Origin: Geosiphon pyriformis uo1
Lineage: Eukaryota; Fungi; Glomeromycota
DNA length: 64,000 bases
NCBI GenBank assembly: GCA_016748015.1
Contig: JAAOMT010000571.1
Span: 408,582-472,581, forward strand
Direction of reading: 5' to 3'
Made by a program: the position numbers and the translations under genes
Part shown: piece after piece, positions 1 through 32,041 of the stretch
Position numbering within the stretch: the first letter of the stretch is position 1
How the letters are laid out: the number at the start of each line of letters is the position of its first letter
The notes under the pieces: generated by a model
Database searches by the model: none
What the model was told of the DNA's origin: nothing
Seen by the model: the letters and a program-made list of their open reading frames with translations, nothing else

Positions 1-1580
1 ATACATCTTTTTATTCTTTCAAGTAGTCATTTCCTTATATATATCTCTTTTCTCACTAGTCTTTAATACACAAACGTTTACAATTATATTATAAATTTGG
101 ATAGAAAACCGTTTATCATTGCATATGTAACTTGAATTTTTATGGGGGAATTTCCAATGATAACTTATTTATTATGATTTATTTATATCTATTTTTGTAG
201 GAGTTTCAAAGTTTTTGAGCATTCACTATTAATTGAGGAAATTCAATGGCAGATGATTCTTTAAGGTTACAACAAATTAAAGTCATAAATTTGAAAAGAT
301 TAGATGAATAGTTTCTAAAATTTTGCTTTAATGAATATTAGAGTTTCGAGATTTAGTTACTGATTATCAGGAAGAGAGAGAATTAGGATAAAAACTTTGT
401 GAGTTAGATAAAACTTTGAATGGTGAGATTAAATTGAGTAATTTATTGAATATATAAAATATTATTTCTTGAGATTATTGACAATAGTTTTTTATTATAT
501 TGTTTTGAGAATAAAATATGTTTTAATTTGTAAATTCTTGGAATTCTAATTATTTGGTTAGGGTACTTGCAGAATAAATTCTTTTCCCATTTGATCCAAA
601 TTTTTTTTTAGAGACATATATCAATAATATAAATATTTTTAAAACTATTCTTTATTTATCTTTACTATTATCATTTAAATTTTAACCGATAAAAGAATCT
701 ATAGATTGGTTTCTATATACAATTAATTATTTTCATTAATTTTATATGCATTAAATTAAAATTAAATAAAAAGTCTAAACAAAAGAAAATTTTTCGAATT
801 CTCTAGACCATTGCGGACTGTCAATATTATTTGTTATGTCTGTAAATGTTTTTCAATACATTAATTTTAAACACAATAGTTTATTAAAATGATTGGTGCA
901 ATCCTAAACTAGGCATTTATAAATTACCATTAATAATTTTTTTTGGTTAATCTCTCAACTCCTCAAATAAACAATAATAAATTTATGTCAAAAAAGATTT
1001 CCATAAATAATAAAGGTTGAAATAGACTCGTGAAAAATGATACAAATTTTAATTTAGAAAAAATAATATTGAATCCATTGAATTAAAGACCCATTTTAAA
1101 AAATAATAATTAAAGTTGAGTAACAAACAAACAAACAAACCTTTTTTGTTGTTGTGAGTGAAGAAATATATTATAATAATATTCAAAAACTTTTGAGATG
1201 AGAAACCGTTTATTTTTGATTTAGTGGTCTATGAATATTTATTATTAAACATTTTTATCGTTTTTCCAATTTGATTCTAGAATTATTGTTTTATATATAA
1301 GATCAAAAGTTTTTTTAACAAAAGAATATATATGTTGATAAAAGAACCAATTAAATCTGTAAACTCTTTTATTTTGTATTTTTTACTATAATTTGTGTAT
1401 TAATAGTGTTAAATATAAACGTTAATAGGTATAAAAAAGAAAGATGAAATGAAAATGATTCTTTAAATTCTTTTCATCGTAATCTTGAATCTTCTATGAT
1501 AATAATACGTTTCCATAAATAAATACTTAAATTTCGAAATTTATTATAATAATCCCTTTATTATATTCAACATATAAATA

Positions 1581-2135
1581 ATGTCATCAAAAGAACTCTT
1601 GAAAAACAACATTTTTTCCATTGATGATGATGATGATGATGATGAGTTAAAAGTTTTTGAATTTGCTCAATCAATGATACAACCAACATCACCCGAGTCT
1701 GATATTCAAGTTACCGTCGATATAACCACAAAAAGACCTAACTTCAACCACTTAGAAAATGATGCTAATACAGATGAAAATTTTTTCAATTCCCATCAAG
1801 AAGTTTACTTTCATTTTAGCACTATTGTTGTTGAAAAGAATCAAAATCAATCTAAACCACAAGTAAGACAAACAACTTCAGTCAAACCTTTAGCTAACAG
1901 CAGCAGTGAATCAATCAGAAAATACTTACAACCGAATACAGAGCGACGAAGAAAACTTGTAAGCCCATTCATCCTTTATAGTAAACTTAAAAGTCCAGAG
2001 ATTGAGGCTTTACATCCTGATAAAAGTAAAGCAGTAATTGCAAAGATTATTTATAAATTGTGGTGGGAATTAGCCGTTGATGAACGTGAATATTGGGAAA
2101 GCGTTTCTGATGGGTTAAGGAACAAAACTTCATGA
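1581..2135 (+). CDS. HMG-box protein (MATA/SOX-like), single exon
   Basis: C-terminal RRRKLVSPFILYSK..HPDKSKAVIAKIIYKLWWELAVDEREYW matches the HMG-box pattern (F-I-L-Y, HP, W..L...E...W). TATA-like GTATAAAAAAG near 1429. Confidence 0.8.
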   Translation: MSSKELLKNNIFSIDDDDDDDELKVFEFAQSMIQPTSPESDIQVTVDITTKRPNFNHLENDANTDENFFNSHQEVYFHFSTIVVEKNQNQSKPQVRQTTSVKPLANSSSESIRKYLQPNTERRRKLVSPFILYSKLKSPEIEALHPDKSKAVIAKIIYKLWWELAVDEREYWESVSDGLRNKTS

Positions 2136-2348: not shown

Positions 2349-4019
2349 TTAGTTTAGAATTTTTTCAAAGTTTAAAATTGTATTCATGATAGTTACTTGA
2401 AGCATTTCAACTAATATATTTGAATAAAATTTTAAAATTGAAATTTATCAATATATAAAGTCCTAAACTTTCATTGAAGTTGTTGGAATATACCATAAAG
2501 ACAAAATAAAATGTTAAACTTTAAATAATATTGATGTTTGATTAATTGAGATAAATTTATCTCTTCCCTTTAAAATTACCCAACATGCTCGAATCAATAC
2601 GTTCAATCATTATAAGAAATAGCTTTAATATATTCTCATAATTGACCTCAACTTTGAGAAGTAGACATGGGTTTCTCGGTAAAAATTTTTGATAAAATTG
2701 ATCCGTATATTTCACAGAATTGGGGAGGATTTAGATTTGATGTTAATGATCCCAATTTTGAATAATTTAATTTGTCAATTTATTGAAAGGAAATTTTTAA
2801 AAGCTAATATTATCTAAAATAAATAAATTTATTCTAAAAAAAAAAAATCGGTTCTTACTTTTGTCCTGATAATTTTAGAATTTGAATAGATATAACAAAT
2901 TTAACCAATTATTATGAACATAAAATTCGTAAAAACAAGTCACACCTTATACTTTTCAAGAAAACTCATTCGATGTTTTTAACATCTGCCTTTTAATCTT
3001 TAACAAAATTTTCAATTATTTTCAATGTTGTTGATTTAGAATCAAATATAGCTATTAAAATTCATTGAATAAATTATAAATAAATTTTTTTTTTTTTAAA
3101 TAATTTTTTTTTAAATTGATACCAAATTATCTAAATTTTTACCCACAATTTTACAAAACAAACTTATTAGCATAAAATAATATTTATTAATAAATATATT
3201 TTAAATGTTTTTAAAAATATAAAAAATAAACATTACTTTATTGCAATATATTTATTTATTTATTAGTTTTAAATGTATTTTTTTGATTAAAATATTATTA
3301 ACAAATAACTTTTTAAATTCTGCCAAACTTATAATATAATTAAAAATAACTTTTTGATTAAACATATTTTTTTGTGAACCAAAGACAGAAACAAAATTTT
3401 TTGTTTTTAGAAATCGATTTTCAAAGTCAAAAATCTGAAGAATTGACACCCAAGAATACAATTTAGAAAATAATTACCAAGCTCAAGTACAATAATATTT
3501 AACATTTAAAAATTTTTAATTTGCTGAAATTTTCAATCTTAAAAATATTTAAAAATAAAAATAAATCAAATTACCAAATACAAAGTTATCTAAACCAAAA
3601 TATTTTAATTTATTATAATAATCTGTCTTTAAATTTATTTTTAAATAATTTATATTTTATACTTTACCTATCGACATTTATTTTAATTTGCTTTTATCAA
3701 ATATATATTATAAGTAGCTTAATAAAATTATATTATTATAATATTATAATAAATTATTATTTAAAATATTAATATTTTTTGTTTAATTTTAACAATTTTA
3801 AATTATTAGTAATTATTATTGTTATTTTTATTATTATACAATCAATAATTTTTCAAATCATATAAATAAATTTTTTAATATTTAAAAAATAAGTTAAATA
3901 ATCTTTTTGTTAAAGATTTTTTAAAACATAATTTTAATAATTTTGCTTGTATAACAAATAAAAATACATAATTTAATAAAAATTTATTAACAATTAAATA
4001 ATTTATTATTATGTTAAAA

Positions 4020-4023
4020 TAAC

Positions 4024-4057
<34 letters not shown>

Positions 4058-4391
4058 TATAATTAGTTATATATAAATTAAATATTATTTAATACTATAT
4101 AACATCAAAGTATTCTAAATTAAACATAATTTATATGTTGTTTTTATATAATTAATTATCTAAGTAAGTTAAATTTAAACTATATTAAATTTATAAAAGC
4201 AAATTTATTTAATACAATTATTTTTTATATAATTGTAATCAAATTATTATTATTAAAAATTAAATTAACTAATTATATAACAGTTTTATTTGTATATAAC
4301 TTAATATATTAAAAGTTTAAAGCTTTTAAAAAACTATTATTTTTAACAAAAATTTTTTTATTAATAAAAAATTTTAATTTGTTATTAAATA

Positions 4392-4424
<33 letters not shown>

Positions 4425-5500
4425 ATAAATTTTTTATATTATATTTTATCTTAAGATTAATAATTTTTTACTTTAATTCTTTTAAAAATATTAATATTCT
4501 TTTTTATCTTAGCATTCACAAAAAAATATTTACTAATCTCATAATTAAAGTAACTAAAAAACTAATAAATTTAACAATAAATTTAATTAACAAATTTTAA
4601 TTTAGCCAATTCGAATTCCAAAAAATAAACTTAGAATTAATCATAAAATTCACAATAGTAATAGAAAAAAAAACCAAAATATAACTGTTTTTGTATAATA
4701 CTTTATATTAGTAAAATAATTTGTAAAATTTTTAAAGTCAACCACAAATTTTAATAAAGCTTAAAAAAAAAAACAGAAATATCTTATAATTTGTAACCAA
4801 TTAATTTACACTTTAATATTTGAAACATTATTAATAATTAAAGATTTTTTATCAAATATAATTTTTTTTAAAATATATAATTTAGCTTAAAAATTAAAAA
4901 TAATAACAATATATCTCAACTATTATGTAAAATTAAAAGACAAAAAAAAGAAACAAATGTAATTATATACTTAAAAAACTAAATTGTTAATTTTAAAAAC
5001 AGTACAACCAAATAAAAAATCCACTAATTTGGCTTTAAATACATTTTTTAAAATAATTATTTCTCTTTGATTTAAAACAAAAAAGATTTTAACACTATTT
5101 TTTTAACAAAAACTGACTAGCAAATTAAAGCTATATTTAAAAACTTATGCAATTTAAAATAGACAATATTATATTATTATTGTTCGATAGGTTTTATCTT
5201 ATTATTAAAAATTTATTAAAAGTATTCATACCATTTTTAACTTATTTATAGTGGCTTTTAAAAAAATATTACAAAAAGCAAACAGCAACAAAAATAGAAT
5301 TAGAATCAAGTATAATTATAAAAATAAAAATAATTATTAATTAATTGAATAAAAAAACTTAATTAAGTTTTAATATATTAAATAATAATAAGTTTATTAA
5401 ATATATTAATATTAATATTTGTTTAATTTTGTTGGCTATTTAAATATTATAATTTAGATTTTAATAAACATATTAAATTTTGGTTTAAGTAAAAAGTATT
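4020..5500 (-). mobile_element. Heavily AT-eroded ORF1-only non-LTR retroelement relic
   Basis: 4100-4360 aligns by eye with 31375-31600 and with the LINE 3' UTR. Reverse complement of ~5270-5310 resembles ORF1 at ~32975. (AAT)n tract at 4025-4055. Confidence 0.5.
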
Positions 5501-7716
5501 TTCTGTAATAAAAAATGCATAATTCGTATTTTTAATAAAATATTTATATATTGTAAATAAGTAAATAGTAATTGAATTATATTCAATAAAATAGTTAATT
5601 TTTTTCAAAAATTTTCAATTAAATTTAATTTTAAATATATTTTAACCAGTTTAATAAATCTTTTCTCAAGACAATTTGTGTATTAAAATTGTTATTTTGT
5701 TTGAACTGTTAATATTTTTTTATAAATATATTTTTTGTCTAAAATTTTTAGGTATTTTTTAATTAATTTTTTTATATTCTGTTTTTTTATTAATGACAAA
5801 ACATTGTTATAAATTTTTTCTCAATTTAATTACAATTATTTATTAACATTAAAAATAGTTTTTGGTTGTTTTTGGTTATTTTTAATTCCCGAATGTATAA
5901 AATTGCCAAGTAAAAAATCAATATATATAATTTTTTTGATTGTGTTGTTAAAACATGAAAAAAAAACAGTTTTATTTTGTTATATTTATTGTGCAATTGA
6001 TTGAACATATTAAAAAAAAAACTTTTTTGGTCAATTAAAATTTTTTTTTTGATTTAAAAAGTATTTATTTCAGTTTTGCAAGACTGTTATAGATTTTAAA
6101 TATTAAATTTTTGTTCTATCATAAATTTTTTTTTTAAACACATTTTTATATTTTCAGAGATTTAAAAATTTTTACATTATAGCTCCAAATGTGATTTTGT
6201 TATTTTCATGAGTTTTAACCAAAAAAAGATCAAAAATATCACAAAAAAGTGTAAATATAATGTTATCATTTAAACCAAAAAATTAACTTTAATAATTTCT
6301 AAAAACTTTATATTAAAATAAAAAGAAATTTCCTTTTGACCAATTTTTCGTGGGAGTTGAGAATAATTGGATTGGAACTTCTTTTTGAGTAAAATTCATA
6401 TAATTTTTTTTTTTTGAAAAATGTAGACTTTTGTAAAAATAGCGTTAAAACCTAAAAGTTTTTTTTGAAAATTTGCAACTGCCGAGAACTGTTAAAATTG
6501 GTGAATTCAAATGGTGAATAAACATTAAAAGTAAATAATTGCAAGCATAAAATATGATTTGACAGTAGAATGGTAAATAACAATCAAAACCTTATTGAAA
6601 AAATGATGTTTTTTATATAAAATTAAACAAGGTTTATTTTTAATTTGGACAAAAACATAGTCTTACTAAAACTTGAATTTTAAAAAATTTCAAGAAAGTA
6701 AATTTCTTGGATTAAATAATATGCAATGGGCTGAAACAAAAAGTGTACAAAATTCAATTAAGATACGCATTATTTTTTGAAAATTTGTTATTCTTGTTTA
6801 TCAAAAAAAGCTTAAAAATTTATATAAAATAATTAATCGAATGTAATGTCAGTTTCAAGAATTAAATAATTGTATAACCCATTAAAAAATGAAAAATTAA
6901 TTTCTTAAAGTTACAAGATTATCCCGCGGGAAATTGGATGAATACATTCAAGGGTTAAGCGTAAGATGTGGTAAATAAAATAAATTCTAACACATATTTG
7001 ACTCTTTGCACAACAAATGTGATTAAGAATGATGAGAAATTCAAAAAATTGATATATATAGTGCTGGCAAGATTTTTAAATCATATCACCTAAAAATATG
7101 TATAATCAAAATAATTTACAAAATCTGTTTTTTTTTTAAATCCGACCCTCAATAATTTACATACCCCAAGATGAAACGGAAATTTAAAAAAAAAAAGAAA
7201 GTTATTTGCGCAACAATTGTTTCGAATCTGTTAGTTACATTTCCAAATCAACAAAACTCCTTTTTTGTTTTTGCGAAACACAAAAGATATCTATATTATA
7301 TCCAAAAGCTTCGCATATTCATGAGCTTATTAGAAGACTTCATTCACAACAAACTGGTTAACAGAATCTTTTGTTAAAATATCTTAAAAAGGAAAAAATT
7401 GGTTATATTCACAAATCATAGATTTTCAAAAAAATATTCCAACAAGCTCTTAAAAATTAAATATGAATTTTATTGAGAATAATAATGAAATTGATATTCA
7501 CATGATCTAGAATGCTGATTTAATTACATGAATCTGAATGTGTACACCAGTGAAAATGCAAGAATTTATATAAAAATGATTCTGTGGAAGAATGTAACAA
7601 TTCGAACGGTTCTTTCCAGGGTAATTTTTGAAGTATGGTATATACATTTTGGATTAGTAACTAGCTTAATCAATTCTGGGTTCCCTATTTAGTTGTCGTT
7701 GTCATTGAACTAATCT

Positions 7717-9189
7717 TTAGTAAAGAGCTCGTTTTTCCTCCTGTCTCTTCCCGTTGCCGCGTTTCCATCCCCTGTTGTTGTTGCCATTGCTGTTGCCATT
7801 AAAGCTACCCCAATTAGCGTTACCATTTTTGTTACCATTCGCGCTACCGAGATTATTGTTGCCATTGTTATTTCCGTTGAAGTTGCCAAGGTTACCATTT
7901 CCATTATTGTTTCCATTACCGCCGCGTTTCCACCACCAGCCGTCCCTATTATTGTTGCCATTGCTATTTCCGTTGAAGTTGCCAATGTTACCATTTCCAT
8001 TATTGTTTCCATTACCACCGCGTTGCCACCACCAGCCGTCCCTATTATTGTTGCCATTGTTATTTCCGTTGAAGTTGCCAAGGTTACCATTTCCATTATT
8101 GTTTCCATTACCGCCGCGTTTCCACCACCAGCCGTCCCTATTATTGTTGCCATTGTTATTTCCGTTGAAGTTGCCAAGGTTACCATTTCCATTATTGTTT
8201 CCATTACCGCCGCGTTTCCACCACCAGCCGTCCCTATTATTGTTGCCATTGTTATTTCCGTTGAAGTTGCCAAGGTTACCATTTCCATTATTGTTTCCAT
8301 TACCGCCGCGTTTCCACCACCAGCCGTCCCTATTATTGTTGCCATTGCTATTTCCGTTGAAGTTGCCAAGGTTACCATTTCCATTATTGTTTCCATTACC
8401 ACCGCGTTCTTCTATTCTCTTATATAAGAGAGGATCTCTCTTATATACTAGAGGATCTCTCTTATATTCTTGAGGATCTCTCTTATATTCTTGAGGATCT
8501 CTCTTCCACCACCAGCCGTCCCTATTATTGTTGCCATTGTTATTTCCGTTGAAGTTGCCAAGGTTACCATTTCCATTATTGTTTCCATTACCGCCGCGTT
8601 TCCACCACCAGCCGTCCCTATTATTGTTGCCATTGTTATTTCCGTTGAAGTTGCCAAGGTTACCATTTCCATTATTGTTTCCATTACCGCCGCGTTTCCA
8701 CCACCAGCCGTCCCTATTATTGTTGCCATTGTTATTTCCGTTGAAGTTGCCAAGGTTACCATTTCCATTATTGTTTCCATTACCGCCGCGTTTCCACCAC
8801 CAGCCGTCCCTATTATTGTTGCCATTGCTATTTCCGTTGAAGTTGCCAATGTTACCATTTCCATTATTGTTTCCATTACCACCGCGTTCTTCTATTCTCT
8901 TATATAAGAGAGGATCTCTCTTATATTCTTGAGGATCTCTCTTCCACCACCAGCCTCCCTTGTTGTTGTTGCCATTGCTGTTGCCATTAAAGCTACCCAA
9001 ATTAGCGTTACCGTTGTTGTTCCCATTCGCGCTACCCCAATTATTGTTGCCGTTGTTATTTCCGTTGAAGTCGCCAATGTTACCATTTCCATTATTGTTC
9101 CCGTTACCACCACGTTTTTCATTGGCAGAGACGGCCACAGCATAAGCGAGAAGTGACAAGGTAGATAAAGTTATAATTTTAGGTGCCAT
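7717..9189 (-). CDS. Secreted Kex2-processed repeat protein (KEP-1), Asn/Gly-rich, WWW-KR repeats
   Basis: Signal peptide MAPKIITLSTLSLLAYAVAVSA, then NEKR. Nine 32-aa units GGNGNNNGNGN(L/I)GNFNGN(N/S)NGNNNRDGWWW(K/Q)R with 96-bp period, two longer units, six DPxxYKR units. Intact 490-aa ORF. Confidence 0.92.
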   Translation of the reverse strand: MAPKIITLSTLSLLAYAVAVSANEKRGGNGNNNGNGNIGDFNGNNNGNNNWGSANGNNNGNANLGSFNGNSNGNNNKGGWWWKRDPQEYKRDPLLYKRIEERGGNGNNNGNGNIGNFNGNSNGNNNRDGWWWKRGGNGNNNGNGNLGNFNGNNNGNNNRDGWWWKRGGNGNNNGNGNLGNFNGNNNGNNNRDGWWWKRGGNGNNNGNGNLGNFNGNNNGNNNRDGWWWKRDPQEYKRDPQEYKRDPLVYKRDPLLYKRIEERGGNGNNNGNGNLGNFNGNSNGNNNRDGWWWKRGGNGNNNGNGNLGNFNGNNNGNNNRDGWWWKRGGNGNNNGNGNLGNFNGNNNGNNNRDGWWWKRGGNGNNNGNGNLGNFNGNNNGNNNRDGWWWQRGGNGNNNGNGNIGNFNGNSNGNNNRDGWWWKRGGNGNNNGNGNLGNFNGNNNGNNNLGSANGNKNGNANWGSFNGNSNGNNNRGWKRGNGKRQEEKRALY

Positions 9190-9260
9190 TTAGAATCTCC
9201 TTTTCTTGTGAAGTGGTTTAGAGATATAGGAATGAAATTATTGTGAAGAAGGGAACGGTT

Positions 9261-9270
9261 CTTTTTATAC
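9261..9270 (-). promoter_or_regulatory. TATA box of KEP-1
   Basis: GTATAAAAAG on minus strand ~75 bp upstream of the ATG. Confidence 0.55.
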
Positions 9271-10313
9271 TTTTGAATACTCCTTAGCTGATTTATAGAA
9301 TTTAGAATTTAGAATTTTCATTTGTGATTGATTAGGGATTACACCATAAAAAAATCGAAAAAGTAATCGTTCTCCAAGCAATTTTAGATGACTATAAGGC
9401 TTAAATTTCTGGTTTCCATATGAGAACAATCATTAATAAGCCTCAAATGCTTTGAAATTCGGATACAGAAAAAGCCAAATTTAAGAATCTTTGGCATTGA
9501 AAATTTATCATATTGAAGCCTCTTTCTGTGGCTTTGAGTTTTAATTTTCAACCTAGATTGGTGGCAATAAAATTCTAAATCGTTGTTTGATCAACTTTCT
9601 TTTCCAGGCAAGATTTTATTGGCTAGCTTTTTTAACCGCTAATCTTCTTCAGCTATTAATTTATGGCAAATATAGCGTCATGTCAATATTCAGACCACGA
9701 TTGAAGCAAGATTCTTGTTTTCTAACGTTAAGCCCATTCTTGGCAAGACAAGTTTCTATTATTTATAAAACAATTAAGGCTCATTAACTTCTAACGCTTG
9801 GGGCAATCATTCTAAGGTTTTCCTTCTTAAGATTTTATTGGTTTGCTTTCTTGCCTTTTCAGGGCTTATATCCTTTCTTGGAACTATTAATTCAGGGTAA
9901 ATTTGCGAAGTAAAGCTGGCGAGATATTTAGTTAAATAGTGTTGTACTATTATCCATATTATATTCGAGGCATTCTTGGGAAAAAATTCTTAGTTTATCG
10001 ACAACAAGTTCGATGTAATAATAAAGCAAAGCCATGAAGTAGGATACGATGATTAGCCTAAATTTGGGCTCTTTTTTCAAGCTTTTTTACCAGTTAAACT
10101 ATGTTTCAACAATAAAATTGACGATCATAAAATAGGGGAGAATTTTGGAAGAAATAGTTCGTATTTGATTCATTAGAGTAGTGTGCTTTTTTACACTTAT
10201 AATAATAATACACTCTCGTAAATTTTTAAAATAACTTGACACAAAGCAAGAGTATTTTTTGTAAATTGACACCGAATTTTTAATTTTCCTCAATAATTTC
10301 GTTTTTCCATGAT

Positions 10314-11124
10314 TCAAGATTTTAGCGCCTCCAATTTCTCTACACTCAAAAATAAGGCATTTGCATCGAGAATAAGTAGCTCCTTATCAAAAATCATCAT
10401 TTTACCTTCAACAAAACCTTTTCTTCCTTCGAGTTTCGTAACCTTGCATTGGCATTTTACAATTTGGTTGGTAGCACAAGGAGTTCTAAAGTTCACATGA
10501 AGATAAGCTGTTGCTCCATTTTCGTGAGGAAAGTATGGATTTACCTTTAGTAGACAAAGTTGTTAGGGAAAAGTTTCTTACTAGATATTTTTTTATTTCT
10601 AAATATTAACTTACAGTCCTAGCAAACATTTCATCCATAATAGTTGACAACAACCCACCATGCACAATCCCATCATGTCCACATAAATCCCTACCAAGAT
10701 GCAAAAAAGCTAACAATTCCATCTTTTCCTTTGAAAAAAATACAACAGGGGGCACTGATAACCGTCCTTTTCCTAATAATGTGCCGGCTGTTAAATTATA
10801 TTTTCTGGTTTCTTCTCGTAACCATGGATATACTCTATTTTCCTCATAGCCTTTATCATTACGTAGCTGTTGAACGAGTGGATGGGAAGATATTTGTTCA
10901 TTGATTTCTCTAGCAAAAGCTAAATTTTCATCTTGCGAAATTGAAGTAATTCTGGGGGGGCGAGTTATAAAGACAGTGTAACGCCTCAAACCACCGGTTA
11001 CCAGAAGAAGCGAGATCCCTATTGCTGTCAAGCCGATTACTACTGTGGTAGTAGTTTTTGAATTAGTGAAAAGATTTGATCCCAAAGATTTAAATGCTGT
11101 TCCATAACCTGAGTTTGACCCCAT
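10314..11124 (-). CDS. PaaI/4HBT hotdog-fold thioesterase (THEM4-like), 2 exons (11124-10615, 10544-10314)
   Basis: HLGRDLCGHDGIVHGGLLSTIMDE motif. Second exon TAYLHVNFRTP..EGRKGFVEG..DANALF. GT-AG intron 10545-10614 keeps frame. N-terminal hydrophobic segment. Confidence 0.9.
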
Positions 11125-12984
11125 TTGAAACTTTAAAAAAATTTTCTGTTTGTCTTTAAAATCTTATGATGGGACAAAAAATTTAAAAAATCTTTTTTAA
11201 AAATGTACAAAGTTGGCTAGGGGAAAATAATTTGGTATGGATATAAAAACTCCGAAATTTGCCTTAATATTATATAATTCAAAAAGTGATGCGCCAAACA
11301 CCAAATAGATTTTATGATTGGTTAAGGATCTACTCAGGTCTTTAAGCAATAAGGAATAAACTGAATATTTTAATAAATAAAGCAAATGTTCAAAAAAAAA
11401 AAAATTTTATGAATATATTATTAAAATTCTATACACAAAAATAAGCCCTCAAGTTAAAACTTATATTCTGTTTGCTTAAAATTAAAATTGTGTTTTCAAA
11501 AAGAATTGAGAAATAAATAACTGAAAATCTCACTTTTTTCTTTTAATTATTATAACTTTTGTATTTGAAAAATTTGACTATATGATGAAATATAATCCAT
11601 TACAAAGCTTGATTCTTTTGAATATTATTCCACAAAAAATTAATTTCTATAAAGTAATAATAAAACTATATAATTTATTATTATTTGAAAAATTTAAAAA
11701 TTAAATTTATTAATTGATTAATTTTTTAATTAATTAAAAATTTGCCAATTATTTGAATTAGAAAAATATTTATTATTAAAATAAAACTTAAAAATTTAAA
11801 TATAAATATTTGAGAATGAAAAATTTAAAAAACAATATTTTTTTTAATTAAATTACATTTTAAAAATTAATAAAAACAAAATTATTTATAATTGGGTTAA
11901 ATATTTACCAATTTTTATAAAATGTATTTGTTTTAAGATTCGAAAAAATATTTTCAAAAACAAAAACTTTACAGAAAATTATTTAATTTTATAATTTGAA
12001 TTTAAATTTGAATTATATTAGTAAAAGATTTTATAATTAAGAGTAAAAACATTAATAATAATTAATATTTTACTTGATTATTTATTTAATTTAACTAAAG
12101 TTTCAAAATTAATCTTAAATTTTAGGTCAAAACTTAAATTAGAGTGTTATTTTTAATTTAAAACTATACAAATTAACAAATTCAAATTCAAAAAATAAAT
12201 AAATGACAAAATTAAAATATATTTACAAAATTCAGACATAAGAGATAAATTTTGAAGAACAACAATAAGCTAGCCAATAATTTCATAATTCAATATTAAA
12301 AGTACTTCAAAAAAAACTTTTTCATAATATTTGGCGAACTTTGTAAATAAAACAATTGAGCAAATGTATTAAAAACTTAAAAGGATGCTTATGTTCCATA
12401 GTCAATTTAATTAGAATTTTAGAAAAGATATTCTAGTTTTTCTCAAAGCTATACAATCACAATAGGAATAAGCCAGCTGTTTTTATATCTGCTGTTTTCC
12501 ATCTAATCAGCATAGTTATTTCGATCATTCAACAAAAAATTTACTTGCCAATTTATGAAAAAGAACTTTGGGTCACCGTTCGGCAATTATCACATAAAAT
12601 ATGTTATTCACAAATTTTTTTATTAAGAAGAGTCGCAAAATAAGCTTTCATCTTGGGATCATGGAACCTGTATGAGGCCAAAAGGTTAAAATTTTTGATA
12701 ATGGTAAATTCCTAAATGCATTGTGGCTACAAAGTTAGCTCTTCAATTGCGACAATATGAAAACCTTTTTTTGAATTTTGATAGTTAAGGAACTTCAAGA
12801 TTTAAATAGCTATTGATAAAATAAATATTGTTAATAATTTCAAGATTTTCTATATCTAAATTAAATTGATATTTTTGTCTCAAGATTTTAATTAAGTACA
12901 AGGAACATGAAAAAAATGCAAATAATTATTGTCATGATTGTCCTATATATTTCTATGTTACCAAAATGTTTCTTTTGAATCCAA

Positions 12985-13884
12985 TTAGTGGTTGAAATTT
13001 CCATTGTAATTTCCGTTAAACCAACCTACATTGTCGTTTCCATTACCGTTACCATTGAATGAACCATCATTGTAATTTCCGTTGGAATTTCCATTTAACG
13101 ATCCTTGGTTGTTGTTTCCATTACCGTTGCCATTGAATGAACCATTGTTTCCGTTGCCATTATTGTTACCATTCCCACTACCACGTTTATGGTTGAGATT
13201 TCCATTGTAATTTCCGTTAAACCAACCTACATTGTCGTTTCCATTACCGTTACCATTGAATGAACCATCATTGTAATTTCCGTTGGAATTTCCATTTAAC
13301 GATCCTTGGTTGTTGTTTCCATTACCGTTGCCATTGAATGAACCATTGTTTCCGTTGCCATTATTGTTACCATTCCCACTACCACGTTTATGGTTGAAAT
13401 TTCCATTGTAATTTCCGTTAAACCAACCTACATTGTCGTTTCCATTACCGTTACCATTGAATGAACCATCATTGTAATTTCCGTTGGAATTTCCATTTAA
13501 CGATCCTTGGTTGTTGTTTCCATTACCGTTGCCATTGAATGAACCATTGTTTCCGTTGCCATTATTGTTACCATTTCCACTACCACGTTTATGGTTGAAA
13601 TTTCCATTGTAATTTCCGTTAAACCAACCTACATTGTCGTTTCCATTACCGTTACCATTGAATGAACCATCATTGTAATTTCCGTTGGAATTTCCATTTA
13701 ACGATCCTTGGTTGTTGTTTCCATTACCGTTGCCATTGAATGAACCATTGTTTCCGTTGCCATTATTATTACCATTTCCACTACCACGTTTATCGTTGAC
13801 ATTTGTATCAGCATTGGCAGAAAGAACAAAAGAAATAAGAGCGGCATATGCCAAAGCAGATAAAGCGATGAATTTTGGTGCCAT
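12985..13884 (-). CDS. Secreted Kex2-processed repeat protein (KEP-2), paralog of KEP-1
   Basis: Signal peptide MAPKFIALSALAYAALISFVLSANA, pro-piece ending DKR, four near-identical 65-aa Asn/Gly units separated by KR (201-bp period; 33+3x67+65=299 aa). Confidence 0.92.
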   Translation of the reverse strand: MAPKFIALSALAYAALISFVLSANADTNVNDKRGSGNGNNNGNGNNGSFNGNGNGNNNQGSLNGNSNGNYNDGSFNGNGNGNDNVGWFNGNYNGNFNHKRGSGNGNNNGNGNNGSFNGNGNGNNNQGSLNGNSNGNYNDGSFNGNGNGNDNVGWFNGNYNGNFNHKRGSGNGNNNGNGNNGSFNGNGNGNNNQGSLNGNSNGNYNDGSFNGNGNGNDNVGWFNGNYNGNLNHKRGSGNGNNNGNGNNGSFNGNGNGNNNQGSLNGNSNGNYNDGSFNGNGNGNDNVGWFNGNYNGNFNH

Positions 13885-15480: not shown

Positions 15481-18149
15481 CTACATCTGAAATTGATATA
15501 TCGCTGAGGAGAAAGGAGTTGATTTGTCGCCTGAGGTTCTATTTTTGCTTCAGCATTCTGAGAGGTTAGCTCAAGAAAGAGGGAGGGTAAGAGAAAAGGG
15601 TGGTGTATTTATGTTCACAATTTTGAAACTGATATTACCAACATTTTATCGATAAACATTCTTAAGCAAATCTTTCATCAGTGAAATTTACAAAATAGCT
15701 AAAATTTCAAGTTTTAATTGAATATTCCCATTGAATTCTAAAAGAATTGACAAGAAGCCATAAAGCATAATAGTTTGAATTTATTAAATTCAAGATTTTT
15801 TCATCTTATTCTTAACTAATGAATTTAAGAAAATAACACCTTCCCAAGCATATCGGGAATTCTTTAATATTGTAATTTCTTAATGTCTTGGATTTGATAC
15901 TGTCATATCTATATCACAAATTAATTATTTTTTAAAAGCTTGATGACGAAAAATTGTGCTAATTTTTGAATTTAAATATAAAAAATCTATTATTTTTATC
16001 TTTCATCAGAATATAATGTCTATTGCCTAAAAAAACATTTCAATCGAATAATTTGTAAACAGGATCATTTTCCTCTGTTCCAAAATGTAATACGATTTCA
16101 AAACATAAAATGAGAAATAAAAAACTTTCAAGTTTAAGTAAAATTATATGGAATTTTTTGTCTATTATGAAACTAAAAAATTTTAAATATTTACTTTTCA
16201 ACATGTTTAAAACAATTAAATTTGAATTTCTGTGCTAATTAAAAAGAAAATACCATATTTAATCAATTATTTTTTATATTGTTATTTGATTTATTAGAAA
16301 TGTTTTAAACTATTTTAATGGTTTACTTATTAATTATTAATACAAAACATACTAAACAAACCATATTTTAAACTATTTATTTTTATTACTAACATTATAA
16401 AACTATTTTGCTGTTAATATTTATTTATTTATTTATTTTAAATCAATGTTAATTTTATATCATTTTTTTCTCTTTTTTGATTTGTATTTTTGTTAGAATT
16501 AGCTTAAAAAGTAAGATATTTACTTTTCTAATTCATTGAATAAAAAATTGTTAAAAATCTGGTATTAAATTTTAAAAATATTAATTAAAACATAAATTAT
16601 AATAGCTGTGTTATTGAAATTGATTACATTAATTAAATTACTTACACATTCAATTTGTTTTCTGGTTAATATTTCTTTATATTGCTCTTAGTTATTTTCT
16701 TTAAAAATATTTCTTAGTGTATTAATTTCATTTATAATAATATATCAAAGACATTATTTGTATAAATTAAAATTATTATTATTTATAATAAACTATTTAA
16801 AATATATTGTTAATTAATAAAAAAATAAATAAATAAATAAAATGTTAAATTGTATTGAAATTTACAATATAATTATAAAATTATAAAATATTAATAAAAA
16901 CTTTTATGTTAAAGTGTGACTTCAATTATTTTTAATAAACAAACTTTTTTTAAATTTTAATTATGTTTAATAAATCAATTTACAGCTTTCTATACATATT
17001 AATCATAATTTAATTGAATGTATTTACAAAATTAAAATATACTGTATATAAAAAAATTGATTTTTGATTTCTAAAAGATATAGAAATACAAGTTTTCTGA
17101 TTTTCTGGTATGAAATTAAAATAGTTCAAAAAAGTTTACAGAAAAGTCATTGATGATGAGCCTAAACAGGTTCCGAAATCAGTATATTTAATGAAAAATA
17201 GTAAATATTTTCTGTTGCCGATCAACATTTAAGTTCGATCAATACTCCAATCTAAATTTGGCTGTGGCATTTGTCATTAATATTTCCTGTTCAGGTTTGA
17301 TTGATGGTGATGAAAAATTACATTCCTCAACATAAATAACTACAAATAGATTCGTTTAAAAGCTCATCAAAATTTGAATATAATATTCTTATAAACTTTT
17401 TTATTTAAATTTTAAAATTTTTTATTAGTATTAGAATATTTATAGTATTAAATCTTTGAATTAATTATTTTTAAATTTAGATATAATATTCAGTTTAAAA
17501 ACAAAATAGACAATTAGTAAATTATATATAAATTCAATCTATATATATAATTCAGGTTTTTTAAATATAATCACCAAAAAAATTTTCAATTTCAAAATTA
17601 AACATAAAATTTTTGAATTTTATTATTAAACAAATATTAGATATTTGTTCTTTTTACGAAAATAATACTAAAAATAACCACAAAATGATAAATATAACTT
17701 TTGTGCTTTTAAAAGTATTCAAAAGCTTTTTTATTTGTTTATCATATTTCGATAAAAATAAAAAAAATTTATGATTAAAAAAATTGTCCTTTTTTAAAAA
17801 CAATTTGTTTTAAATTCTGCTTTAATAATAATTTCAAATTTTTTGCAATTTTATTTTCAAAGGTGAAACTACTTTTATATTTATTAATTTGGCTGAAAGC
17901 TAATTTCAAAATATTTTTCTTGTAAGTACGCTGAATAAAAATGAGATATTTTTGAGGTTCAATTATTTACTTTCTTTCCATAATGAAGAGATCGATTATA
18001 GAAAAATACAAAAGTGTAGTCTTATCAACATTAGAAAATATACAGAAAGAGAGAGAGAGAGAATGGTACACCTGCAGTCACTCAGCATTACAAAGACAGA
18101 ATGTTAGATTGTTTAATACCAAATTTGAATACTCATCATTCCTAAGTAA

Positions 18150-28659: not shown

Positions 28660-31329
28660 TGTTAAGAGGGAAATGGTGGTAAAATGAAGAGAATTGATAA
28701 ATTTGTAAGAAGATACGAGAGATGAACTTGTATAAAAGTCAAGTTACAACAGTTGTCCATTGTGAGCAAGGTTTCACAATGTATGTTAAAGTCTACAAGC
28801 ACAATGGAAAGTATGAAAAGTTATTGGGAGTGGTATAATTATTAGTCGGGCGATGAATGCATATTGTCAATCAAGACTTTTTTCTCAACTTTCTCACGAC
28901 AATCGATCAATTCAGCTAATCTTTTTGAATTGAATCGGAATCACGTGATTGATACCAGCTTATCGAATTGCAATAAATTGACGAAAAACTCCGGAAAGAC
29001 AAGATTGTCATGCAGATTTTCCGATGGGCGGGCACTCCTTAAACTTTATTAGAGATATGAGAATTTAGGATTTTTTTTAATTTTAAAGAATATCGTTGCT
29101 CGATTCTGGAATGTCTCAAACCCCATCCCTTTCGAACATATCGAGGAGAAGATTAGGTGGGAATTACTGTGTAACCAAAACAGTAGAGAAATTTTTTACA
29201 TTGTTATTTTTTCATTGATGTATTTCGTCATTTATTTTAAACAACAATTCGTTTTAATTGAGAGGAAATCTCTTAACCTTTTCAGGATAGAAATAATTAG
29301 AACTACAATTTGCGTACCTCGCGCTGCATCGTGCACCAAGGCGCGATGATGCATTGGAAATCATTTAGTTACCTGTTAGAAAATTTGTTTAGGTCCAAAT
29401 TAGTTTAGAACTTTAGCTAAAACGTGGTAAAGGATCGTTCATTGCATAAACAGGTACTTTTTAGGTTTGAGTCGCAATTTATATTCTTTAATCCTTAATC
29501 AGGTCAAATATCTAAAATTAAAATATGTAACTTCATGGATCATCAATAATGAAGGAAATCTGGAATAACAAATTTGTTGATGTGGACGCATTATATAAGA
29601 TAATGCTAAGATTTTCAAAATGATAGAACCACTGACACGGTAGATTGTCCATCATTTTTGGCATGTAAGCCTCCGAGATGATAATTTAAAAATTTATTAA
29701 TTAGGTTTTGATATCGGAACTTTGGAATCGAACGTATAGAATATTAGTTTCATTTTCAAGATTTATTACGCGAGGCAAATAAGATGAAAAACCCTCTAAA
29801 ATTACTTAAAATCAATAATTAATTTCTTTCCAATGTTCAATGATAATAGGTTAAAAGTAATTTCTTTTCTTTTCTTTTAAGCTAACCACATTTTTGAAAT
29901 ATGAGGATTCCGAAATTCTGCATCGAGGGGCTAGAATTTTTTTATTTTGATCATGAGATGCTGGAGGTATGAAAAAATATATATACATTTTTAAATATTT
30001 CTTAATTGGAAATTGATAAATAAACTTTCCACTGTATTTGATGAAATTTGTACAAAAATATTCCAGATCGATAAACATAGTTTTTTGAAACGATCCGAGC
30101 GAAAAATTATATTTTCCAAAACTAACCGAAATTATTTGGAAATTACACCATTGGCTTTTTTCAATCCCTGAAACAGTGGTTTCGAATCGTTTTTTTGTAA
30201 ACTATTCGAATGAAAGTACATATAAACATTGGTATCAATTAATTTGATAGACTCTTCATTCATTTTTGGTCTTTTTTGTTTTGAAGACTTGCCAAAATTC
30301 AAAGGCTCATTGAACTTGATAAATTTGGTAATGAGTCGAAATCTTAAATTTATCTTTTTAATTACATGTATTATCTAAACCCCAAGCTTCAATGAATTCT
30401 TAGTGGTGAAAAGATATTACCAGGTTTTACTTTTATCATTTGGCTGATTTCTACAAAAAAATTTTCGATCTTGCCACATTTCCCCGTAGTTTGAAATTCA
30501 ACCTGAATTGGATTGTTAAATAATGGGCATCAACTATTGTTTGTTGTGTAACATAATTGTTTATTTATGTACTTGATTGTGAAATTAAAGGGAAACCAAG
30601 CTAAAAGTTCGAGCCTTTTAGATCGGGTTAATTTGGACTTGATAAGATTAGGTGGGTCGAAGGTGTTTAACCTCGGTGCTTTTATCACTTGATGATGTCA
30701 CGAGAAGGAATCTTATGTTGAGAATATTCTTTTACTTTTCCTAAATAGAAACAGGTAGCAATAATATAATATTATCTGCCTTTAAACAAATGTCTGCAAT
30801 TGCAATTAACATTCCAACATTTCCAATTAATTTCAAATCTATTTTTAACCGACATAAATATTTTTATCTTTTTGAACTTTAAATTTAGCCCAACACTTTA
30901 TTAAAAATTAAAATTATAAAAGTTGATTGAGTTGGCATTTACTTAATTATTAAGATTATTTTTTAAAAGAAAACATTATATATTAAGTTTTCTTTAAATT
31001 AATATTTATATATTAAACAAAAAATCCTGAATTAGTTTAAATAATCTAATATATGTTTTAAAATTATTATTTTTTCAACTTTAACCTTGTTTTTGAATTT
31101 TAACTATATATTTTTTAAATAATTATAATAAATTAATTATATTAAGATATATTAAAAAATTTTAATTAAAATAAAATAAAATAAAATAAAGTATAACAAT
31201 AAATAATATTATTATATATGTATATATATGTTAATAAACTGTAATATAATATAAAATAATATAAGTAAAATATAAAATAATAATTTAATTTTAAAAATAT
31301 ATTAATAATAATTAATTAAAAAAATAATT

Positions 31330-31950
31330 AATTTTTTATTTTATTTTATTTTATTTTATTATATTATATTAACAAAATATATATTCTAAATTAGAAACAA
31401 TTCATGTAATTTAACATATAACCAGTTACTTGAACCAATCTAAACTATATATTATATAATTATTTTTTACATAATTACAATTAATTTATTGTTACCAAAA
31501 ATCAAATTAGCTAACTATATAGCAGTTTTATTTGTATTAAACTTAATATTAAAAGTTTTAATCTTTTAAAAAACTTTTATTTTAGCAAAAAATTTATTAA
31601 TAAACAAATCTAAAAAACTTTACCAAAAATGTTAAAAATATTTTTAATATTAATAAAAACAATATTTTTATGGACATTTTATAAAGTAACAACAGCAAAT
31701 AAAAACAAATTCGAAAATGATTAAAACTTGGCAATATTAAAAGTAAAAAAATAAACAAAATTTGCAAGTTTAATCTAAAAAGCAATATTTAAAAAATTTA
31801 AAACCCAAAATTTGTACAAATAAGATTTATATTCTTATTTTAAAACAGATTTTACACTAATAAAATCAGTATATAGACTAAAAAATAGTTTTAATATAAG
31901 TTAACTTAATCTTAAAAAAACATTAAATATTAAAATAAGATTATTTATTT
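31330..31950 (-). mobile_element. Eroded 3' end of an ORF1-only non-LTR element
   Basis: 31380-31450 resembles the LINE 3' UTR (34355-34426). Upstream KTAI*LANL resembles the ORF1 C-terminus KTAKWLVKL (~34040). Confidence 0.55.
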
Positions 31951-32041
31951 AAAATTTTTTTAATAATTATTAATTGTTTTAAGTATTATTAAAAACAATA
32001 AAAAATAAAAAATAAATTTTTGTCTTCTTAATTTTATAACT

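Follow-up and report, generated by a model that had tools for sequence, protein, structure and literature searches.

Two Asn/Gly repeat genes with predicted kexin sites in Geosiphon pyriformis belong to the already named GpRIC/GN-rich protein family

The window analysed here is a stretch of 64,000 nucleotides (nt) of Geosiphon pyriformis uo1 (NCBI GenBank assembly GCA_016748015.1, contig JAAOMT010000571.1, positions 408,582 to 472,581 of the forward strand; this contig is called C773 below), within an assembly of 128.3 Mb in 792 contigs. Of the non-mycorrhizal relatives of arbuscular mycorrhizal fungi, Geosiphon is the closest, and it is, to our knowledge, the only fungus known to house cyanobacteria inside its cells. 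A first-pass annotation made from the letters of the sequence alone had guessed an early-diverging symbiotic fungus as the host, which is right, and had described a tandem pair of secreted repeat-peptide precursors, KEP-1 and KEP-2 (here gene 1 and gene 2), as a candidate undescribed peptide system. The list of open reading frames (ORFs) confirms two intact ORFs on the same strand, 3.8 kb apart, with related N-termini (MAPKIITLSTL... for gene 1 and MAPKFIALSAL... for gene 2). Our data suggest that both genes probably encode secreted asparagine/glycine (Asn/Gly) repeat proteins cut at Lys-Arg (KR), as members of a family in which the secreted Gly/Asn-rich proteins of early-diverging Glomeromycotina have expanded locally.

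Gene 1 (7717..9189, minus strand) is an intact ORF of 490 amino acids (aa) that does not require an intron. The translation begins with a predicted signal peptide of 22 aa (9124..9189, minus strand), cut after VSA and directly followed by the pro-piece NE-KR (9112-9123, minus strand), then continues with Asn/Gly units closing in a Trp-rich tail and KR, with DPxxY-KR spacers between the blocks. The repeat array (7852..8888, minus strand), delimited by Tandem Repeats Finder and a repeat search, is made of 96-nt units (32 aa), and according to Tandem Repeats Finder a super-unit of 480 nt is duplicated with 99% identity between the copies. In-silico digestion at the 19 KR sites gives 20 fragments, ten of them similar Asn/Gly units of 30-62 aa: five identical units of 30 aa, two of 34 aa and one each of 53, 56 and 62 aa, the longest being two units joined through a degenerate QR. 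Were this lone QR boundary also cut, there would be 11 peptides; the first-pass annotation had predicted about 11, of 30-56 aa. The digest further yields nine 5-aa spacers (DPQEY, DPLLY, DPLVY) and three 3-aa end pieces. Nearly all the lysines of the protein (19 of 22) sit in KR, for 1.4 KR expected from composition. Gene 1 also carries 64 Asn-Gly dipeptides. No other sequence deamidates spontaneously as readily, so the secreted products would grow more acidic with time, with 0.98 Da added per deamidated Asn-Gly.

Gene 2 (12985..13884, minus strand) is an intact ORF of 299 aa with the same general layout, namely a predicted signal peptide of 23 aa (13816..13884, minus strand) cut after LSA, directly followed by the pro-piece NADTNVND-KR (13786-13815, minus strand), and four Asn/Gly units of 65 aa, the first three closing in H-KR and the final one in H-stop. 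Its repeat array (12989..13804, minus strand), identified with the same two tools, has 4.1 copies of a 201-nt unit at 99% identity. Digestion at its four KR sites gives five fragments, the 8-aa pro-piece and the four similar 65-aa units that had been predicted for it, and four of its five lysines sit in KR (0.07 KR expected from composition). Judged by eye from the translations, both signal peptides combine a basic n-region with 15-18 hydrophobic residues and a c-region of small residues, and no transmembrane segment is seen. The two proteins contain 36-39% Asn and 23-25% Gly but not a single Cys, the repeats make up more than 80% of each, and the main peptides of the in-silico digest are neutral to acidic (isoelectric point (pI) 4.2-5.8). 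The translations and the digest thus bear out the KR-ended pro-piece and the KR-delimited repeats described at first. As the copies are 99% identical at the DNA level, much of the repetition in both genes is recent duplication, and because the arrays are young, the KR sites inside one gene are not independent events. The repeats of the region had also been called heavily mutated outside these two ORFs, for which no support was found: within positions 1-24000 of the window all repeats of at least 120 nt lie inside genes 1 and 2.

To place the two genes in the genome, the assembly was searched with gene 1 and with a KR-free paralogue, giving 63 and 69 matches, respectively, on more than 25 contigs. 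Defining a family member as an intact ORF whose N-terminus is hydrophobic and which has three or more 13-residue units, at least 32 distinct members were extracted from the fetched loci, so that the view of a tandem pair was too narrow. Members are clustered at 379-422 kb on C773, which takes in the window, and at 154-308 kb on C580. Nearly every one of them shows a period of 13 or 26 by autocorrelation, with the 13-residue consensus N-G-N-x-N-G-N-x-N-hydrophobic-G-x-x. Internal KR is present in 15 of the 32 members; since about half of the family is without it, the common denominator is the 13-residue Asn/Gly repeat and not the KR partition. The 81 KR sites of the family occur in 59 distinct sequence contexts, mostly preceded by Y, W, H, E or D, and all internal ones lie at unit boundaries, despite unit lengths as different as 30, 53-59, 65-68, 91-93 and 125-131 aa. 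Several members also have runs of 3-12-aa spacers with KR on both flanks. This recurrence of KR at the boundaries in diverged paralogues is the best argument at the level of sequence and suggests that the sites are used.

Other members are giant uninterrupted arrays free of KR, one of 934 aa (locus L034, 1410-4214, minus strand) and one of 1067 aa (locus L031, 1774-4977, plus strand). The 934-aa member carries 66 N-glycosylation sequons, and most KR-partitioned members have 0 or 1 for 3-12 expected from composition; this depletion was rejected as independent evidence, as it follows from the fixed repeat register. A further member (locus L037, 2009-3520, minus strand, at about 256-257.5 kb on C701) consists of seven units of 66-68 aa that each begin with Gln-Ala, units 1-6 closing in Tyr-KR and the last one in Tyr-stop; the N-terminal Gln left after cleavage could cyclise to pyroglutamate. 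Another one, 29 kb upstream of the window (locus L013, 2072-2998, plus strand, at about 379.1-380.0 kb on C773), is broken by a run of N, which is an assembly gap. Repeat copy numbers of the family in the assembly may be unreliable.

One public sequencing run contains part of the stretch, and the comparison was made over positions 7885-13884. Gene 1 is covered by 5829 short contigs of this run with a summed depth of 1e4 to 7e5 over 7885-9284, whereas the depth is zero over the following 4.2 kb (9285-13484). A contig of 100 nt with a depth of 23557 matches exactly positions 9096-9195, a unique segment with the start codon and the signal peptide of gene 1. The contigs span gene 1 from 7885 to 9233, where a loose end reads CCCCGGCCG and then Illumina adapter; on the gene strand this end is CGGCCGGGG preceded by the Illumina adapter. 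We take CGGCCGGGG to be the SfiI-cut end of a SMART-type cDNA linker, which makes the run a library of cDNA inserts that had been excised and places a cDNA 5' end at 9233. The 5' untranslated region of gene 1 is thus 9190..9233 (minus strand), and a TATA box, GTATAAAAAG, lies at 9261..9270 (minus strand), 28-37 nt upstream. Transcription of gene 1 starts from a TATA promoter, with the 5' end at 9233, and the gene is hugely over-represented in the library. At position 9013 the assembly has G, but A makes up about 74% of the cDNA-derived depth; the change is synonymous (AAC to AAT in Asn codon 59 of gene 1) and may reflect allelic variation, a different strain or a near-identical paralogue.

For gene 2, light contig cover was found over its first 400 nt (13485-13884). 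This cover is not uniquely its own because two paralogues, L021 and L023 (on C771 and C370), have the same 5' part; the entire upstream region of gene 2 is also common to the paralogues on these two contigs. The upstream alignment of genes 1 and 2 found no common promoter beyond the start-codon region. Low-complexity arrays such as these could in principle be chance open frames in non-coding tandem-repeat DNA, all the more so as they are open in several further frames on both strands. Only the named frame, however, has an ATG and a signal-peptide-like start, the cDNA cover stops at a 5' end positioned by a TATA box, and the architecture recurs in the 32 paralogues and in other Glomeromycotina (see below), so that this explanation is already contradicted and deserves practically no credit.

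Signal peptides followed by KR-delimited repeats had been recognized from the start as the architecture of the Kex2-processed repeat proteins (KEPs), which Le Marquer et al. 2019 surveyed across 250 fungi (PMC6339444). The operational definition of that survey asks for a signal peptide, at least four fragments after cleavage at KR/RR, at least three of them similar, and repeats over at least 15% of the protein (PMC6339444). With the signal peptide read by eye and the cleavage predicted, both genes fall within this definition, so the assignment was right. The processing enzyme also has a candidate gene: a kexin-type convertase split in exons was found at C608:603083-606253 on the minus strand (locus L053). 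Its Peptidase_S8 exon (2170-2595 of the locus, minus strand) was found by domain search together with a P domain (1471-2109, minus strand; 53 bits, over the cut-off), both at about 603.8-605.7 kb of C608, and this P domain is the only P-domain match in the assembly.

Among known KEPs, yeast alpha-factor, Ustilago Rep1 and Candida Ece1 (PMC6339444) have no sequence similarity to genes 1 and 2, whose predicted peptides are far longer (30-65 aa) and of low-complexity Asn/Gly composition. An alpha-factor-type pheromone precursor was rejected: the main units of genes 1 and 2 begin with GG or GS, without the X-Ala/X-Pro of the Ste13 type (over the family, main units start with GG, GS or QA, and only the 5-aa spacers begin with Asp-Pro), and the Cys-free cores differ from the short Trp...Pro-Cys-Trp-type core of alpha-factor. 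A precursor of a dikaritin/ustiloxin-type ribosomally synthesised and post-translationally modified peptide was also set aside, as PF11807 (UstYa, DUF3328) was not found in the whole assembly, which is weak evidence as no positive control gave a signal. Hydrophobins with spacers or extensions rich in Gly and Asn (Claviceps CFTH1, Cordyceps CmQHYD, Trichoderma; PMC7827705) are likewise secreted fungal surface proteins, in which such stretches serve as spacers between multiple domains (PMC7827705). Genes 1 and 2 are not hydrophobins of this kind, having neither Cys nor the eight-cysteine hydrophobin domain nor a Pfam match.

The family has in fact been described before. Schultz, Wu and Baumann 2022 reported "glycine- and asparagine-rich proteins" (GN-rich) in Ambispora leptoticha, Paraglomus brasilianum and Geosiphon (PMC8786786), the Geosiphon ones being GpRIC1-3, three full-length cDNAs (MH580277-9) from the Hoffrichter 2018 thesis as cited there. 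GpRIC1-3 are GN-rich and secreted, all have endoplasmic reticulum (ER) signals, and their KR sites were already interpreted as Kex2 sites yielding short secreted products (PMC8786786). In the "extracted cDNA inserts" of an expression library they account for 22.3, 5.0 and 3.0% of the reads, respectively (PMC8786786, Table S9), so that three cDNAs make up about 30% of the library reads according to the thesis cited in that work. Genes 1 and 2 resemble them in species, ER signal, Gly/Asn richness and KR di-motifs, and gene 1 is in addition extreme in a cDNA-insert library, the public run that covers it fitting the description of the GpRIC library. They belong to this already named GpRIC/GN-rich family. 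From the library cover and the footnote of Table S9, gene 1 is probably one of GpRIC1-3, most likely the most abundant, while gene 2 at least is a further member because GpRIC2 and GpRIC3 have lengths (456 and 470 aa; PMC8786786) that differ from its 299 aa. The homologues were scored ER-signal positive by Schultz et al. (PMC8786786). Amlep_AGL4/5 of Ambispora leptoticha and Pabra_AGL2 of Paraglomus brasilianum have, like genes 1 and 2, a signal peptide, then a KR-ended pro-piece and the same 13-residue repeat (PMC8786786), Pabra_AGL2 even with the H-KR unit boundary of gene 2 (PMC8786786 supplement). The Ambispora protein P0003 was matched directly by HMMER. Unlike genes 1 and 2, most of the Ambispora and Paraglomus relatives have KR in the pro-piece only, fewer and shorter units, and no Trp-triplet tail was seen in them.

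The databases alone would have suggested a truly new peptide family. Exact look-up in a collection of 15 billion proteins found neither the two ORFs nor five paralogues, a search of the protein collection with only the N-terminus of gene 1 gave no match, and a HMMER pass over 1.84 billion representatives returned only 41 matches at E <= 1e-3, all weak, from Geosiphon, Ambispora, bacterial and algal proteins. Pfam gave only sub-threshold noise for both proteins (GRP, 14.8 bits for a cut-off of 30), NCBIfam had no match for gene 2, neither collection has a model covering the 13-residue repeat, and the best hit of an ESM Atlas feature search (0.83, in unnamed bacterial clusters) was below the meaningful level. 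The top matches in both protein searches are Geosiphon and Ambispora proteins, and the word-index search with gene 1 retrieved a single one, the Geosiphon model G9A89_006378 (697 aa). This model looks chimeric, with an unrelated N-terminal half joined to the repeats of a family member of 496 aa, whose signal peptide is left out; in the genome that member (locus L002, 1432-2922, plus strand, at about 252.7-254.2 kb on C580) has a start codon and a signal peptide of its own. Most of the family is either absent from the deposited gene models or wrongly merged in them. Given GpRIC1-3, alike in composition, in ER signal and in the reading of KR as Kex2 sites (PMC8786786 and the thesis cited in it), an undescribed family is very improbable: the first-pass annotation correctly rediscovered a system whose architecture and Kex2 interpretation were already published. 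Our analysis adds the picture of a large, clustered family with at least 32 intact genes, for three named GpRIC, split into kexin-partitioned and uninterrupted members, and a concrete gene list with exact predicted peptide masses usable for peptidomics. The predicted peptides of genes 1 and 2 weigh 3.2-6.7 kDa, with 3219 Da for the 30-aa unit present five times in gene 1 and 6541 Da for the 65-aa unit.

The same 13-residue register occurs outside the family in a set of secreted proteins (P0004, P0005, P0009, P0012, P0019, P0021 and P0030-P0051). These are Mesorhizobium proteins with signal peptides, Coccomyxa algal proteins, a hydrophobin of the ascomycete Microdochium (P0012) and metagenomic proteins that carry either a VPLPA-CTERM sorting signal or a signal for type I secretion. 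Several bacterial carriers have in common a short motif ahead of the repeats, A-P-V/I-A/T-L-T/S-D-x-Q-L. Shared ancestry with the fungal family and convergent low-complexity sequence may each account for this distribution. AlphaFold2 gave no fold for gene 2 alone (predicted local distance difference test score, pLDDT, 34), and for the KR-free paralogue L028, with a 22-row family alignment, a model with a pLDDT of 68, a predicted template modelling (TM) score of 0.49 and two short strands per 13 residues. Foldseek comparison of the L028 model with PDB gave no match at E <= 1; what it returned were unrelated beta-helix proteins with TM scores below 0.3. The model would fit disorder or a slim stacked repeat, and the solenoid picture is treated as a lead because such models come readily from perfect repeats. 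It is conceivable, though unlikely in our estimation, that the 13-residue unit is an undescribed cross-kingdom extracellular repeat module, forming a solenoid with two strands per coil or an amyloid-like ladder, which Geosiphon would have expanded to more than 30 genes with kexin sites added in about half, giving pre-cut, aromatic-capped blocks of a few coils that assemble outside the cell at the cyanobiont interface.

If genes 1 and 2 are kexin-processed precursors, as we think likely, the pre-protein would enter the ER, a Golgi kexin would take off the pro-piece after [E/D]-KR and cut every internal KR, and a Kex1-type carboxypeptidase would remove the basic residues. Gene 1 would then supply about ten secreted Gly/Asn peptides of 30-62 aa, uncharged to acidic and with a C-terminal tail rich in Trp, and gene 2 would supply four peptides of 65 aa. 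Their role might be that of a bulk extracellular material at the wall or the symbiotic interface, self-associating via Asn/Gly ladders and aromatic tails, a suggestion that we make with little confidence; a low-abundance hormone-like signal seems less likely. Several points weigh against this interpretation. The case for KR cleavage is made here at the level of sequence, and with repeats 99% identical at the DNA level, the conservation of KR within one gene says little. The structure predictions quoted above are weak. The 490 and 299 aa of genes 1 and 2 do not correspond to the lengths of GpRIC2 and GpRIC3. The public run is labelled "RNA? (probably DNA)", and the abundance in the library may come from cloning or selection instead of natural expression. 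Finally, 17 of the 32 family members have no internal KR, so that the repeat can evidently function uncut.

This last point opens the way to a different product, in which the signal peptide and perhaps the pro-piece are removed, the long Gly/Asn polymer itself is a structural or disordered wall protein, and internal KR is unused or serves for trimming only. The uninterrupted 934- and 1067-aa members speak for it, as do the classification of the relatives as disordered cell-surface proteins, some with glycosylphosphatidylinositol signals, by Schultz et al. (PMC8786786) and the spacer function of GN-rich stretches in the hydrophobins mentioned above. We nevertheless hold it to be unlikely for genes 1 and 2: KR is confined to the unit boundaries in 59 contexts and in paralogues of unlike unit length, the runs of KR-flanked 5-aa spacers in gene 1 are a usual feature of prohormone-like precursors for which a polymer would have no evident use, and a kexin is present in the genome.

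Cleavage at KR would also be compatible with bioactive peptides directed at the Nostoc endosymbiont, comparable to the nodule-specific peptides of legumes or to Gly-rich antimicrobial peptides, rather than with a matrix. The name and the source of the family tie it to the stage of cyanobacterial symbiosis, gene 1 has a very high cDNA representation, and its Trp-rich tails could insert at membrane interfaces. The main species are, however, neutral to acidic, unlike cationic membrane-active or antimicrobial peptides, close relatives are also found in Ambispora and Paraglomus, neither of which has a cyanobiont, and free-living bacteria and algae carry this 13-mer too; a Nostoc-directed function thus appears quite doubtful, and secreted repeat proteins cut at KR remain our preferred interpretation of genes 1 and 2.

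Between the two genes, at 10606-11124 (minus strand), lies an ORF of 172 aa with one hydrophobic segment and without significant Pfam match, which is probably an exon of an unrelated gene. The window also contains blocks of very low guanine-plus-cytosine content, with 12.5% at 4001-6000, 16.9% at 16001-18000 and 19.4% at 30001-32000, for 25-40% elsewhere.

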